Shown: positions 3,947-10,113, numbered from the stretch's first letter. The stretch is 64,000 nucleotides of DNA from Octopus sinensis (GCF_006345805.1 NC_043006.1:11470001-11534000); one strand, 5' to 3'. Made by a program: numbers and translations. The notes: a model not told the origin generated them from the letters alone.

Positions 3947-3991
3947 CAGGATAGTCTTCTGTTAAAGGGAAAGACTTCTTGCTCCACCAAG
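3947..3991 (-). CDS. Coding exon of the putative prepropeptide: (S)WWSKKSFPLTEDYP
   Basis: Acceptor ccatgttttaatttcag|C and donor CCTG|GTAAGT; 45 nt, phase 1-1, open in frame with the previous exons. Confidence 0.7.
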
Positions 3992-4142
3992 CTGAAATTA
4001 AAACATGGTAGAAATATTCTCTTAGTAATGTAGGTAAGTTAATGTATGCGTATATTTATGTATTAAAGTATTCTTAAAGCGATAGAGGTGAACTTATATG
4101 GTTCCAACTGGAACCGAAAATTAGACGCACGTATCATCAACA

Positions 4143-4470
4143 CCATGATCATAATCATCATCATCATCATCATCATCATCATCATCATCATCATCATCAT
4201 CATCATCATCATCATCATCATCATCATCATCACCGTCGTTTAACGTCCGCTTTCCATGCTGGCGCGGGTTAGACGGTTTGACTGAGGGCTGGCAAGCCAG
4301 AAGGCTGCACCAGGCTCCAATCCGATCTGGCAATGTTTCTACAACTGGATGCCCTTCCTAATGCCAACCACTCCGAGAGTGTAGTGGGTGTTTTTCACGA
4401 GCCACCAGCACGAGCGCCAGTCAGGTGGTACTAGCATCGACCACGCTTGAATGGTGCTTTTTGCGTGCCA
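4143..4470 (-). mobile_element. Repeat with RTE-like 3' tail and (GAT)n terminal microsatellite
   Basis: Minus strand GGTTGGCATTAGGAAGGGCATCCAG motif followed by (GAT)n at 4230-4143. Confidence 0.55.
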
Positions 4471-4477
4471 CAAATAG

Positions 4478-4662
4478 ATATTTCGTCTGCCGCTACGAAC
4501 TGAGTTCAAATTCCGCCGAGGTTAACTTTGCCTTTCATCCGTTCGGGGTCGATTAAATAAGTACCAGCTACGCACTGGGGTCGATATAATCCACTTGATC
4601 CGTTTATCTGTCCTTGTTTGTGCCCTCTGTGTGTAGCCCCTTGTGGGCAGTAAAGAAATAAG
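4478..4662 (+). mobile_element. Headless single unit of SINE family A
   Basis: ATTTCGTCTGCCG...GAGTTCAAATTCCGCCGAGG...AGTAAAGAAATA, same unit as the arrays at 28264 and 63508. Confidence 0.85.
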
Positions 4663-5431
4663 AAAACAGAATTTCACGGAATTACGCTGTTCATTCGTTT
4701 CAGCCAAAGCAAAAATCGATGAAAAAGGGAGAAGCGCTGCGAAACAAAGATGTACCAGGTGGCAGTACGACACCAGTGAGAAGACTGATGCCTGAGGGTT
4801 ACATCAAGTGGCTTCTAGCGGCGGGAGACTGAACCACGACAGGCTAGTCCCACAGAGAACATTTTCGGTTACTTTTGAGTACTCTTTGAATAATTGTAGT
4901 TGTCTTTGATTGTATAGAAGCTGCATGGATGGCAGAAAACATAAAAAAGCAAAACTTTGCGTACTAGTGCGTGGAGAGCAAGTCTACTCGAATATGCATA
5001 CATAAATAATAGACAGTCACGCACACATATATTTAAATACATACATACATATATATATGTGTATATATATATATATATATATATATATATTATATATATA
5101 TATATATATATATAATATATATATAGATAGATATAGATATATATATAGATATATATATGTATGCATATATATATATATTATATAATAATATTATATATAT
5201 ATGTATATATATATATATGTATGTATGTATGTATATCTATATATGTATGTATATATATATATACTATATATATATCTAATATATATATATATATATATAT
5301 ATACGTATGTATGTTATATATTATTATATATTATATATAATATACATATATACAGCATATATATATGTGTGTGTGTATATACACGTATGTATGTATGTAT
5401 GCTTGTATGTATGTATATTTGTATATATGTA

Positions 5432-5741
5432 TGTAGTGGTTAGGGGCATTCGGCTCATGATCGTGAGGTTGTGAGTTCAATTCCCGGCGACGCGTTGTGT
5501 CCTTGAGCAAGACACTTTATTTCAGGTCGCTCCAGTCCACTCGGCTGGCAAAAATGAGTAGTACCAGTATTTGAAAGGGCCAGCTTTGTCATACACTGTG
5601 TCGCGCTGAATCTCCCCGAGAACTACGTTAAGGGCACACGTGTCTGTGGAGTACTCAACCACTTGCACGTTAATTTCACGAGCAAGCTGTTCCATTGATA
5701 GTATCAGCTGGGACCATCGTCGTCGCAGCCGACGGAGTGCT
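5432..5741 (+). mobile_element. tRNA-derived SINE family C
   Basis: A-box TAGTGGTTAG, B-box GAGTTCAATTCC, then GTTGTGTCCTTGAGCAAGACACTT; second copy at 42032-42348. Confidence 0.8.
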
Positions 5742-5801
5742 CCTTATTTTATGGCACAACAACAGTAATGTGAATCGTGTATTAGCAATACGAGTGCTTG
5801 C

Positions 5802-6067
5802 GGAGGCACATGACCTAGTGGTTAGAGCAGCGGACTCGCGGTCGAGGGATCACGGGTTCGAATCTCAGACCGGACGGTGTGTGTGTGTGTGTTTATGAGC
5901 GAAAACACCTAAGCTCCACGCAGCTCCGGCAGAAGGTAATGGCGAACCTCTGCTGACTCTTTCGCCACAACTTCCTCTCACTCTTTCCTCCTGCATCTTG
6001 CAGCTCACCTGCGACGGACCGGCGTCCTGTCCAGGTGGGGAACCTACATGCCAAAGAAACCGGGAAA
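5802..6067 (+). mobile_element. tRNA(Arg)-like-headed SINE family D
   Basis: A-box TAGTGGTTAG, anticodon-like arm gcggacTCGcggtcg, B-box GGTTCGAATCTC, followed by a non-tRNA body. Confidence 0.65.
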
Positions 6068-7165: not shown

Positions 7166-7722
7166 TATTGATCGATTTTTGTTGCTTTTTTCTTGTTTGT
7201 ATATATATATATATATATATAGATATATATATATATATATATATCTATATATATATATATATATATATATATATGTATATGTATGCATGGATACTCACAT
7301 ACACGCACACACACACACACACACACACACACACACATCTTTTAAATGTTTCTGATACTCCAACTGTATAACGAGCTGTGATTGAATAGGGTTCCTGATA
7401 CAATGTAAGGGCGCTGTTGTCGAATACGCCGTGCTTCGATTATTTTTTTTTAAATATGTAATTCCCGAACACAGCTGGTTTTTTCCGGAGATAATGATAA
7501 AGAGATAGATAGATAGAGAGAGAGAGAGAGAGAGAGAGAGAAACATAACAAGGAAAAGAAAGGAAGAATCGCCCTAAGTTATACTCATTTATCCACCCAG
7601 AGGTGACGAAAGGCAAAATTGAACTCGGGTCACAAAGAGCTGGAATGATTACTGCAGCATACTGTAATTGACGTTTTAACAATTTTGCTAATTTGTCGCC
7701 TGCTCTTTGTAACGGATAATAA

Positions 7723-8302
7723 TCCTTTCTACTCTAGGCACAAGGCCTGAAATTTTGGGGAGGCGGCCAGTCGATTAGATCGACCCCAGTACGCAACTGG
7801 TACTTATTTAATCGACCCCGAAAGGATGAAAGGCAAAGTCCACCTCAGCGGAATTTCAACTCAGAACGTAACGGCAGACGAAATACCTATTTCTTTACTA
7901 CCCACAAGAGGCTAAACACAGACAGGACAAACAAGGACAGACAAAGGTATTAAGTCGATTACATCGACCCCAGTGCGTAACTGGTACTTATTTAATCGAC
8001 CCCGAAAGGATGAAAGGCAAAGTCCACCTCAGCGGAATTTGAACTCAGAACGTAACGGCAGACGAAATACCTATTTCTTTACTACCCAAAAGAGGCTAAA
8101 CACAGAGAGGACAAAGAAGGACAGACAAACGGATTAAGTCGATTAGATCGACCCCAGTGCGTAACTGGTACTTATTTAATCGACCCCGAAAGGATGAAAG
8201 GCAAAGTCGACCTCGGCGGAATTTGAACTCAGAACGTAACGGCAGACGAAATACCGCTAAGCATTTCGCCCCGCATGTTAACGTTTCTGCCAGCTCGCCG
8301 CC
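7723..8302 (-). mobile_element. SINE family A multimer (head, about 3 units, 3' tail)
   Basis: One tRNA-like head GGCGGCGAGCTGGCAGAAACGTT, repeated ~180-190 bp units, tail ...GTGCCTAGAGTAGAAAGGATTATT. Confidence 0.85.
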
Positions 8303-9139
8303 TTTTAGTATCTGTCATGTATTTGGGTATCCTTTTAATCAACAATCTGTCAATCACCCGTATCTTTGATTATTTGAAATCAATCACCATTTGTCAGTGA
8401 CTATATATATATATATATATATATATATATATATATCTATATATTATATATATATATATATATATAATAAACAGTCGGCGAAAAATATTTAAGCATTGAC
8501 TTCAACGAGAAACTTTACCTTGTCTCCAAATCGAAATAATACTATCTACCGTTATGTTTTTATTATTTTAAATGAAAACCATGACTTGTCGGCTACCAAT
8601 ATTAGCAATTGGAACTAGAAACATACTACATTAATCAATGAGAAACTTTGCTATGTTCTTTTATAAAATTCGGCTTACCCGATCATGTTTAATGCTTAAC
8701 CGAAGAACTGGACTTTTAGTAATGTAAAAAAAAAATCAATGTAACGGAAAAAATCAACGTTTACGAAAAATTTATTTTAAATGGTTTCTAATTTTGGCAC
8801 AAGGCCAGAAGTTTTGAGATAGGGTGTTAGTCGATACTATCGTATAGTACTTTATTTTATAGACTCCAAAAGGATCAAAGGCAAAGTCGACCTTGGCGGG
8901 ATTTGAGATCGAAACGTCAAGAAAACATAGCGAAGACGTATGCAAAGCAGTTTTTCCGAGCTCCAACAATTCTGTCAGATCGCCGCCCCAAATCAATTAA
9001 CTTTACTTTTCCTCCTTTCGGGGTAGATAAAATAAGTACCAGTTGAGCACTGGGGTCAATGTAAATGACTTGCTCCCTTTCCAGAATTTGCTTGCCTTGT
9101 GTCAAAATTTTGAAACCAATTGATGGATCCCACTTCTTC

Positions 9140-9450
9140 CAGTCTTATTTTCACTCAGTAATAAAGACGATTCTACGTGGTCGCTCGACCTGCTAGAAAT
9201 TGTAGTAAAATAGCACCAAGACTTCTGTCTGAAGTCGTGAAGGCGCATGGCTCGTCACAGGTGCCAAGCTGTATCGGCCCCTTTGCCTTTCCCTTGGATA
9301 ACACTGGTGGCGTGGAGAGGGGAGGCCGGTATGTATGGACGACTGCTGGTCTTCCATAAACAACCTTGCCCGGACTTGTGCCTGGGAGGGTAACTTTCTA
9401 GGTGCAATCCAATGGTTTGTGTCGTGACCGAAGGGGAGGCTCAGACTGTC
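9140..9450 (-). repeat. Interspersed repeat family F (possibly RTE-related)
   Basis: Homologous in opposite orientation to 42670-42850 (cttcggtca...gattgcacctag...aaggttgtttatggaag). Confidence 0.55.
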
Positions 9451-9680
9451 TGAAGTAAAGAAATGACATTAAAAATATAATTCTACGAACTCTTTAATAA
9501 AAGAGTCATAGCTGAAATATCTTTCATCGTAGATATTCCCTAAAAAGGTTGACCTAGGGCGAAACAGCAAGCGCAACAACTAATTTAAATGGTCCAACGT
9601 AATCTGTTATCTTATATTTTCAACTTTGCTAATCTCAATCCACTCAGGTCTAAGATCAAGCTGGAGAACAACTCCAAAGA

Positions 9681-9880
9681 TTACGAATAAAATCACCACT
9701 CTCCAGAAACTACAATGATAAACCTTTCACAAGATAAGTAGACAAAGTTACGAATAACATCCTCACTCTAAGCAAACCACGATGATAAATCATAACAAGG
9801 TAAATAGAGAAGGTTACGATTAGCGTCCCCATTTTCTGGTATTACGATGTAAAATGTTTAACAAGTTAAATAAATAAAAT
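9681..9880. repeat. Diverged ~66-bp tandem repeat, 3 copies
   Basis: Units start TTACGA at 9681, 9748 and 9814. Confidence 0.6.
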
Positions 9881-9883
9881 TAC

Positions 9884-9950
9884 CTGATAAAATTGGCAGC
9901 AGAATGAAGAAAAGCTCGAGAAATATGATTCGGTTGTAAATTTGGGGCAT
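9884..9950 (-). CDS. First coding exon of a putative secreted prepropeptide (signal peptide MPQIYNRIIFLELFFILLPILS); whole exon 9884-9961 including 11 nt of 5'UTR
   Basis: Minus strand: acceptor attacatttcag|A at 9961, ATG at 9950-9948, donor TCAG|GTAATT at 9884. Encodes a hydrophobic core and ends in phase 1, matching the next exon. Confidence 0.7.
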
Positions 9951-10113
9951 CGTGGATTGTTCTGAAATGTAATAATATCATAAAATTAGTTTATATGTCG
10001 ATATCTCACTTTATATTTGTAATATGCATTTAAATAACTTGAAAACGAGTATGGATAAATACTGGAGTAGGACTGTTTGTTTCTTATTCAACCCAAATAA
10101 ACTAAAAAGAATA

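Follow-up and report, generated by a model that had tools for sequence, protein, structure and literature searches.

We analyzed a 64,000-nucleotide (nt) stretch of Octopus sinensis DNA (NC_043006.1:11470001-11534000), called the window here at its full length. Its minus strand carries three short coding exons of a gene for a small protein in which a pentapeptide, NSWWS, lies between two dibasic sites. Very probably, the gene is the octopus orthologue of the one for the WWS peptide proneuropeptide, with the 5' three-fifths of its coding region inside the window; the precursor would be processed by prohormone convertases through the steps set out below. The parts of the gene within the window are as follows (positions are those of the window unless another sequence is named).

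9951 to 9967, minus strand: 5' leader, comprising 11 nt at 9961-9951 and a conserved tttcag before it at 9967-9962.
9884 to 9950, minus strand: coding exon 1, 67 nt, with the ATG at 9950 and a phase-1 end at donor GTAATT; encodes MPQIYNRIIFLELFFILLPILS plus the first base of codon 23, most of the predicted signal peptide (direct reading and scripted translation).
6650 to 9883, minus strand: intron 1, phase 1, GT...AG, with copies resembling short interspersed nuclear elements (SINE-like) and (TA)n microsatellites throughout.
6581 to 6649, minus strand: coding exon 2, 69 nt, phase 1 to phase 1, acceptor ...TTTCTTTCCCAG, donor GTAAGT; encodes AIYTVKA, then EDDAEDILGQMIN-KR-N and the first base of a Ser codon, these comprise the last part of the predicted signal peptide (6649-6630), then the acidic spacer, and at 6590-6581 the first dibasic site (KRN plus T).
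3992 to 6580, minus strand: intron 2, phase 1, interrupting the Ser codon of N-S-W-W-S.
3947 to 3991, minus strand: coding exon 3, 45 nt, phase 1 to phase 1, acceptor ...TTTTAATTTCAG (TTTCAG), donor GTAAGT; encodes (S)WWS-KK-SFPLTEDYP and the first base of the codon that follows, with SWWSKKS at 3991-3972.
1 to 3946, minus strand: the portion of intron 3 that lies within the window.

The splice junctions of the three exons are all in phase 1 and use canonical sites, with the CAG of the exon 2 acceptor preceded by a polypyrimidine tract. Spliced together, the exons amount to 181 nt and encode MPQIYNRIIFLELFFILLPILSAIYTVKAEDDAEDILGQMINKRNSWWSKKSFPLTEDYP (60 residues; scripted translation), in which KR-NSWWS-KK-S spans the junction between exons 2 and 3 (6590-6581 plus 3991-3972). 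An earlier interpretation made from this DNA alone (the sequence-only reading) had proposed three minus-strand phase-1 exons, and we recovered the same splice sites and exactly the same translation. It had started exon 1 at 9961, which is 11 nt before the ATG at 9950 and directly follows the tttcag; the exon stands, with its coding part beginning at the ATG. It had also taken the three tiny exons for the whole gene, which does not hold. Exon 3 contains no stop codon and its end is the donor GTAAGT, so the gene continues past it, and the orthologues have five coding exons, of which exons 4 and 5 lie off the window.

Comparison with Octopus bimaculoides points to purifying selection on exons 1 to 3 in the phase-1 frame. 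Over the aligned positions, 14 substitutions fall at codon positions 1, 2, and 3 in the proportions 2/1/11. Nine are synonymous and five nonsynonymous, giving proportions of synonymous and nonsynonymous differences (pS and pN) of 0.24 and 0.035 and a ratio of 0.15. Exon 1 has a single substitution, six of the eight in exon 2 are synonymous, and exon 3 contains one in-frame 3-nt indel. The phase-2 alternative, which the sequence-only reading had set aside in favor of phase 1, fails along with the remaining frame: both have five stops in the spliced sequence and neither shows a synonymous excess. In Octopus vulgaris, exons 1 to 3 are identical at 181/181 nt, as are the flanks of each exon (30 nt on the upstream side and 20 nt on the downstream side). 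By itself this identity is weak evidence, since the blocks of perfect conservation between the window and O. vulgaris (148 to 363 nt) are longer than the exons.

These comparisons bear on whether the window carries a nonfunctional or truncated copy whose exons were kept through low divergence from O. vulgaris. The perfect blocks that reach past the exons fit that idea, as does the location of exons 4 and 5 outside the window. We nevertheless consider a pseudogene very improbable: the locus is syntenic and collinear with single loci in O. vulgaris and O. bimaculoides, the ATG and all splice sites are intact, and the third-position bias and low pN/pS relative to O. bimaculoides are strong.

To compare the spliced peptide with the rest of the window, we built a hidden Markov model (HMM) from 34 noncephalopod members of the family described below, including one from the nemertean Lineus longissimus (P0009), and scanned the six-frame stop-to-stop fragments of the window plus the spliced peptide (3,806 sequences). 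The 60-residue peptide scored 32.5 bits (E=1.4e-8). The best unspliced fragment, at 13 bits, was the one bearing exon 3, and nothing else in the six-frame scan of the window stood out against this model. Spliced transcripts were found in a cuttlefish. Nucleotides 709 to 745 of a Sepia esculenta mRNA contig align to window 6617-6581 and nucleotides 748 to 764 to 3989-3973, so the contig is collinear across the junction from 6581 to 3991. For the Sepia homologue (P0003), the sequencing-run collection has uninterrupted mRNA contigs in 42 blocks (at least 10 different Sequence Read Archive [SRA] runs), and two of the runs were traced to S. esculenta larval RNA sequencing (RNA-seq) papers.

Each exon is just 45 to 69 nt, and the initial protein search with the 60-residue peptide gave a single weak match (E=4.4, to the O. 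vulgaris protein P0001), useful only in that P0001 carries the downstream exons. Taken by themselves, these two facts would suit a random series of short open frames whose edges happen to resemble splice sites, in AT-rich intronic or intergenic DNA. That explanation is refuted by the annotated orthologues, the codon bias, the introns conserved in three phyla, the spliced cuttlefish mRNA, and the HMM score, and we give it practically no weight.

The window is collinear with a locus on O. vulgaris chromosome OX597822.1 (L001), at roughly 90 to 96% nucleotide identity, and with the O. bimaculoides locus at roughly 83 to 94%. Translation of the O. vulgaris genomic sequence gives the same 60 residues that the window encodes (100% identity). 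In O. bimaculoides, a profile search recovered LOC106872510 (P0012, 126 amino acids [aa]), whose five coding exons are the same three exons plus two more; its database name is "uncharacterized protein." P0001 is an 88-aa O. vulgaris "hypothetical predicted protein" that contains SWWSKKSFPLTEDYP in the phase-1 frame followed by DRSSLEDLRCDQTKFFFNCYIRLCVSELVSCAKESKDSKRSFDDCKSDYRMCGLKCMSSVTPLSE; it shares the exon 3 frame with the window and runs on into a Cys-containing domain. The O. vulgaris annotation mis-splits the gene (L001 1-8530 and 10001-16605). An upstream 97-aa model ends at L001 8530, within exon 2, whose acceptor it uses in phase 0 (QYTP*). The P0001 model lacks exons 1 and 2 and starts at an ATG within intron 2 (MNVTVYYL). 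The counterpart of this spurious first exon in the window is "VTVYYL" at 5020-5003, in intron 2, where the start codon is not ATG. The gene had been called hidden, and that description fits in part: it is broken up in the O. vulgaris annotation, but a full model exists in O. bimaculoides, named just as uncharacterized.

The O. vulgaris locus has exon 4 (L001 14067-14120) about 3.0 kb and exon 5 (L001 16459-16605) about 5.4 kb downstream of exon 3. According to the orthologues, exon 4 encodes DRSSLEDLRCDQTKFFF, and exon 5 encodes a CYIRLCV...C...C...C domain and the stop codon. A tblastn search found no match to exons 4 and 5 or the Cys domain within the window. Alignment of window positions 1-520 to the O. 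vulgaris exon 4 region located the end of homology at about position 494, at a microsatellite/repeat roughly 270 bp before the O. vulgaris exon 4, and in O. bimaculoides, where the last aligned base is window 524, about 650 bp more precede exon 4. By this comparison, exons 4 and 5 of the window gene must be placed beyond the left window edge.

Combining the window sequence with the orthologues from O. vulgaris and O. bimaculoides, we reconstructed the full protein of about 125 aa, to which P0012 is about 90% identical. The order of parts is a predicted signal peptide (residues 1 to 29), the acidic spacer, KR, NSWWS, KK, a variable linker, and the Cys domain. The domain follows the pattern C-x8-C-Y-x3-C-V-x5-C-A-x13-C-x6-C-x3-C in the orthologues. 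Across the family, six Cys residues are conserved (C-x4-C-x6-C-x9-13-C-x6-C-x3-C), with a seventh in many species. With the 35-sequence alignment as input, AlphaFold2 modeled the P0012 domain with high confidence as a hairpin of two long antiparallel helices (residues 63 to 98 and 103 to 125; predicted local distance difference test [pLDDT] values of 90 to 96), whereas the region between the KR site and the Cys domain was predicted with low confidence (pLDDT, 54 to 56). The reconstructed protein had no Pfam match at E<=10, a PDB sequence search with the family profile gave nothing meaningful, and a Foldseek search of the model against PDB returned generic helical hairpins, with none at E<=0.001.

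An exhaustive phmmer search with P0001 (1.84 billion representatives) yielded eight further proteins of 125 to 158 aa. Nine representatives were found at E<=1e-3 by phmmer and 38 by profile, all 115 to 205 aa and sharing one architecture. Two profile searches extended the family to about 40 proteins, every one labeled "uncharacterized" or "hypothetical." A third, larger profile search added just two bivalve-type sequences and none from annelids, brachiopods, or arthropods. The members are distributed as follows.

Cephalopods: Argonauta and O. bimaculoides, with Sepia by RNA-seq.
Gastropods: Haliotis, Lottia, Gigantopelta, Pomacea, Littorina, Nucella, Babylonia, Biomphalaria, Bulinus, Lymnaea, and Elysia.
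Bivalves: Mytilus, Dreissena, Saccostrea, and Ruditapes.
Others: the chiton Liolophura, the nemertean Lineus longissimus, and the priapulid Priapulus caudatus.

All share a signal peptide, a variable spacer, K[RK]-N[SAT]W[WF]S-KK-S, a linker of very variable length, and the Cys domain. The conserved KR-xxWWx-KK pattern that the sequence-only reading had asked to be looked for in other lineages is strongly present: the K[RK]-N[SAT]W[WF]S-KK-S motif shows little or no variation across 35 aligned relatives (cephalopods, gastropods, bivalves, chiton, and nemertean), and its columns are likewise invariant or nearly so across 35 to 37 aligned members. Invariance in the 35-sequence alignment is confined to the columns K43, N45, W47, S49, K50, K51, S52, Y81 (the Tyr after the first core Cys), and the six Cys residues; the motif R, S, and second W are at least 90% conserved, and the flanks are variable. 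Variants include NSWFS in Haliotis, NAWWT in Baseodiscus, and NIWWT in Priapulus, where the whole motif reads KK-NIWWT-KR-T. Changes at the dibasic sites keep a dibasic pair, as in KK at the first site in Elysia and KR at the second in Priapulus. The Priapulus protein (XP_014670241.1) carries CYVERCVEGFVGCATNAASSEEFASCIMVHRM twice; tblastn found one genomic copy (L014, KQ715396.1 7990-8148), and the internal duplication is probably a gene-model artifact.

The gene structure is shared as well. Lineus and Priapulus have the same five-exon structure, including a phase-1 intron right after ..K[RK]N that splits the pentapeptide, and Lottia agrees at the four exons recovered, exon 2 again ending after ..K[RK]N. 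The exon boundaries in O. bimaculoides are those of the family, and the window shows the first three exons. Exon 1 of Lineus likewise encodes 22 residues. Whether the pentapeptide reads NSWWS or NAWWS is set by the last base of exon 2.

The Lineus member identifies the family. The WWS peptide, or MS-peptide 1, was named by Thiel et al. 2021 (Mol Biol Evol 38:4847; PMC8557429) from nemerteans and phoronids, and it was the only one of the five to be found also outside nemerteans. "WWS" is the name-giving conserved motif, not the peptide detected by mass spectrometry (MS) (PMC8557429). The published Lineus precursor, MMRQCFGPF...NKRNAWWSKKSDPAL...CYINRCVPDFVECGR... (PMC8557429 supplement), and P0009 (XP_064624427.1) differ by one residue near the N terminus in the printed sequences. 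The motif that marks the family, a single dibasic-N[SA]W[WF][ST]-dibasic-[ST], occurs in the window as KR-NSWWS-KK-S. We are highly confident, from sequence comparison, that the gene is the octopus orthologue of the WWS peptide proneuropeptide and a member of this family. The suggestion in the sequence-only reading that the peptide might be undescribed thus falls away, and its view of the gene as a small secreted precursor of prohormone type is upheld in substance by the conserved architecture and motif. The term "WWS peptide" was found in the literature only in Thiel et al. and its preprint. Searches with motif strings and LOC identifiers returned no molluscan report in the main texts of the searchable literature (supplements and subscription journals were not covered), and as far as this literature can be searched, no earlier report places the family in Mollusca or Priapulida.

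The 5' end of the gene may extend beyond the leader listed above. A TATAAA lies upstream of exon 1 at 9995-9990 on the minus strand, and the 30 nt upstream of exon 1, identical in O. vulgaris, differ by one base in O. bimaculoides. The S. esculenta mRNA has a 5' untranslated region (UTR) of about 600 nt, the length of which suggests that the gene has one or more upstream untranslated exons. Exon 1 may be the first, in which case its leader is short, or it may be internal and follow an untranslated exon.

We propose the following course of processing. The precursor would enter the endoplasmic reticulum cotranslationally and lose its signal peptide after VKA. The N-terminal hydrophobic core covers residues 7 to 21, with small residues at positions -3 and -1 (V-K-A), as seen by hydropathy. 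The -1 residue in Lineus (G26; site G26/S27) shares an alignment column with octopus A29, and the Lineus site has been verified by MS. A prohormone convertase would then cut after KR, as MS has shown for the Lineus orthologue: there the signal peptide is removed, cleavage occurs at KR, and the peptide detected is SPLPDNEEMVNEILN, the spacer that begins at the signal-peptide site and ends at KR (PMC8557429). Cleavage at VKA|EDD and release of the acidic spacer, both proposed in the sequence-only reading, correspond exactly to this measurement. A cut after KK followed by carboxypeptidase trimming would leave the nonamidated pentapeptide NSWWS. We infer this excision because the motif is nearly invariant and because exchanges of KK for KR and of KR for KK keep the sites dibasic; the carboxyl end would be free since no Gly precedes KK. 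The linker would be released along with it, and the disulfide-stapled helical domain would be cosecreted as a second product or a carrier. That the five-residue core and its dibasic sites are kept while the flanks drift argues for a free pentapeptide, and on sequence grounds we lean slightly toward its release. With respect to receptor, cell type, and function, every member of the family is so far an orphan.

Several points weigh against the gene model and the processing proposed here. The gene has been read in octopus from genomic DNA, its transcript support coming from Sepia, and the intactness of this copy past exon 3 is judged from the orthologues, exons 4 and 5 and the stop codon being off the window. 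The octopus signal peptide is predicted from hydropathy and alignment alone. In the O. vulgaris annotation, the acceptor of exon 2 is joined in phase 0 to other exons upstream. MS by Thiel et al. detected the spacer peptide and neither NSWWS nor NAWWS (PMC8557429). Finally, the residue after KK or KR is always Ser or Thr, phoronids and Priapulus included (3974-3972 in the window, Ser52), which simple excision of a pentapeptide does not explain. This residue could reflect a requirement at P1', a modification site, or the importance of a longer product.

The last two points suit a different account, in which the bioactive product is the C-terminal disulfide-rich helical protein, a hormone or ligand of about 60 to 80 aa, and no free pentapeptide is made. 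KRNSWWSKKS would then be a processing or sorting element, or a conserved N terminus in which KK is left uncut. KK is generally a weaker convertase site than KR, and the invariant Ser/Thr after it looks as if the site were read through. The Cys domain is as conserved as the motif, with Y81 and six Cys invariant, and its fold is predicted with confidence. The MS peptide from Lineus comes solely from upstream of KR (PMC8557429). Conversely, the linker from KKS to the Cys domain varies in length and sequence and has low predicted confidence, as a spacer between two products would. The second site is still dibasic when it changes (KR in Priapulus and phoronids), and a conserved five-residue core between dibasic sites is the classic signature of a released neuropeptide. 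We consider this account possible and rather unlikely as an exclusive one; it is compatible with the release of NSWWS, and both products may be active.

The window DNA around the gene is AT rich and octopus-like, with many (TA)n and SINE-like repeats. In O. vulgaris and O. bimaculoides, a Peptidase_M1/leukotriene-A4-hydrolase-like gene neighbors the syntenic locus. Intron 1 contains three head-to-tail copies of a 184-nt SINE-like unit (7769-8320), the second and third being 95% and 71% identical to the first. The O. vulgaris match to this unit (L001, about 14.6-15.2 kb) also matches the window at about 28.3-29.1, 48.8-49.2, 60.4-60.6, and 63.5-64.0 kb. ARAGORN found no tRNA-like genes in positions 1-12000. 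A long (ATG/CAT)n trinucleotide microsatellite occupies 4150-4235 in intron 2. Together with the very long (TA)n tracts at about 5050-5430, 6730-6980, 7220-7340, and 8400-8470, it explains most of what looks like divergence from O. vulgaris. Farther away, the following elements were seen.

18218 to 20165, plus strand: two overlapping long open reading frames (ORFs) of 198 and 470 aa, with no Pfam match, probably part of an unclassified repeat element.
24000 to 26600: a GC-rich block (55% GC), the only such stretch in the window, with broken ORFs.
25945 to 26598, plus strand: an ORF matching Pfam zf-RVT (E=3.7e-8), which marks it as a remnant of a non-long-terminal-repeat retrotransposon.
34308 to 34817, minus strand: a 169-aa ORF matching Pfam Transposase_1 (mariner-type partial DDE domain; E=1.7e-19), a transposase fragment.

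The results widen the known range of the WWS family, which now takes in Cephalopoda, Gastropoda, Bivalvia, Polyplacophora, and Priapulida as well. Members in both Mollusca and Priapulida push its origin back to the protostome ancestor, before the lophotrochozoan-ecdysozoan split. Few stretches of any lophotrochozoan propeptide are as conserved as the ten residues KRNSWWSKKS, which nonetheless stand in gene databases without a name. The case also illustrates that a neuropeptide gene made of microexons can be recovered from raw sequence; ORF scanning misses it, and one published octopus annotation mis-splits it. The family is within reach in tractable models of neurobiology (Octopus, Aplysia, Lymnaea, and Biomphalaria).

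The pentapeptide has a counterpart in cone snail venom. In a table of Conus eburneus venom peptides, Cys-free 15-mer conomarphins end in ...NSWWS (Bt3/Eb3), ...NSWWT (Bt1), and ...NSFWT (Bt2/Eb1) (PMC7601563). Conomarphins are inactive in fish and mice and active in molluscs, with molecular targets unknown according to that paper (PMC7601563). The C-terminal pentapeptide thus shows the same W/F and S/T variation as the WWS family. Bt1, Bt2, and Bt3 are listed without modifications (PMC7601563), hence without a C-terminal amide, which fits the free C terminus predicted for NSWWS. Conomarphins differ in being ten residues longer N-terminally and, in some cases, in containing D-Phe, Hyp, or Gla, and they derive from the M gene superfamily, an unrelated precursor class (PMC7601563 table). 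With its different N terminus and its Cys domain, the window protein is not a conomarphin; at most the resemblance is mimicry, and we claim no homology.

The match covers five residues and came from a string search of the literature, so that chance may account for it; NSWWS also turned up in a WNT5A study and a signal-peptide proteomics study, presumably in unrelated proteins. That Conus venom peptides copy hormones of the prey or of the snail itself is an established theme, and the neogastropods Nucella and Babylonia, relatives of Conus, carry an endogenous KRNSWWSKKS precursor. We regard the idea that conomarphins are venom mimics of the endogenous WWS peptide as doubtful. The broader proposal, that NSWWS-type peptides form an ancient orphan protostome system (Mollusca, Nemertea, Phoronida, and Priapulida) with conomarphins as its venom mimics, seems to us no less speculative. 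The coincidence nonetheless offers a cheap and concrete hypothesis bearing on two orphan problems: if it is true, the conomarphin target is the WWS receptor, and conomarphins are ready-made probes for deorphanizing the system.

Prohormone-3/-4, PKYMDT/whitnin, MIP, neurophysin, insulin, CHH/ITP, and eclosion hormone were rejected by their motifs, with Cys spacing compared as well. Two of these invite closer comparison. The MIP/allatostatin-B peptides (WWamide, W-x6-W-amide) are also short Trp-rich protostome neuropeptides. They are, however, multicopy and amidated by way of a Gly before the basic site, with a W at both ends, whereas the window precursor has a single copy with adjacent WW. Membership fails on both counts, since NSWWS directly precedes KK without a Gly and the Trp residues are neighbors. 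The vasopressin/oxytocin-neurophysin precursors resemble the window protein in outline, with a short, conserved, basic-flanked peptide followed by a disulfide-rich domain that is possibly a carrier or second product. Here, the peptide does not directly follow the signal peptide and has neither a Cys ring nor an amidation signal. The domain has 6 or 7 Cys residues and is predicted to be helical, compared with the 14-Cys neurophysin fold, to which it shows no sequence or Pfam relation. The absence of Cys from the first 60 residues and of any Pfam match at the threshold given above led us to reject membership.

The reconstructed octopus protein and its gene share with the WWS peptide family the signal peptide, the spacer, KR-N[SA]WW[ST]-KK-S, the linker, the CYxxxCVxxFVxC...C...C...C domain, and the five-exon gene, and the window peptide matches at E=1.4e-8 a profile that includes the Lineus member. 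There are also differences: octopods have NSWWS instead of NAWWS, and the phoronid members carry a longer peptide between KR and KR, KR-QYSYGGVWF[ST]-KR-T (PMC8557429).

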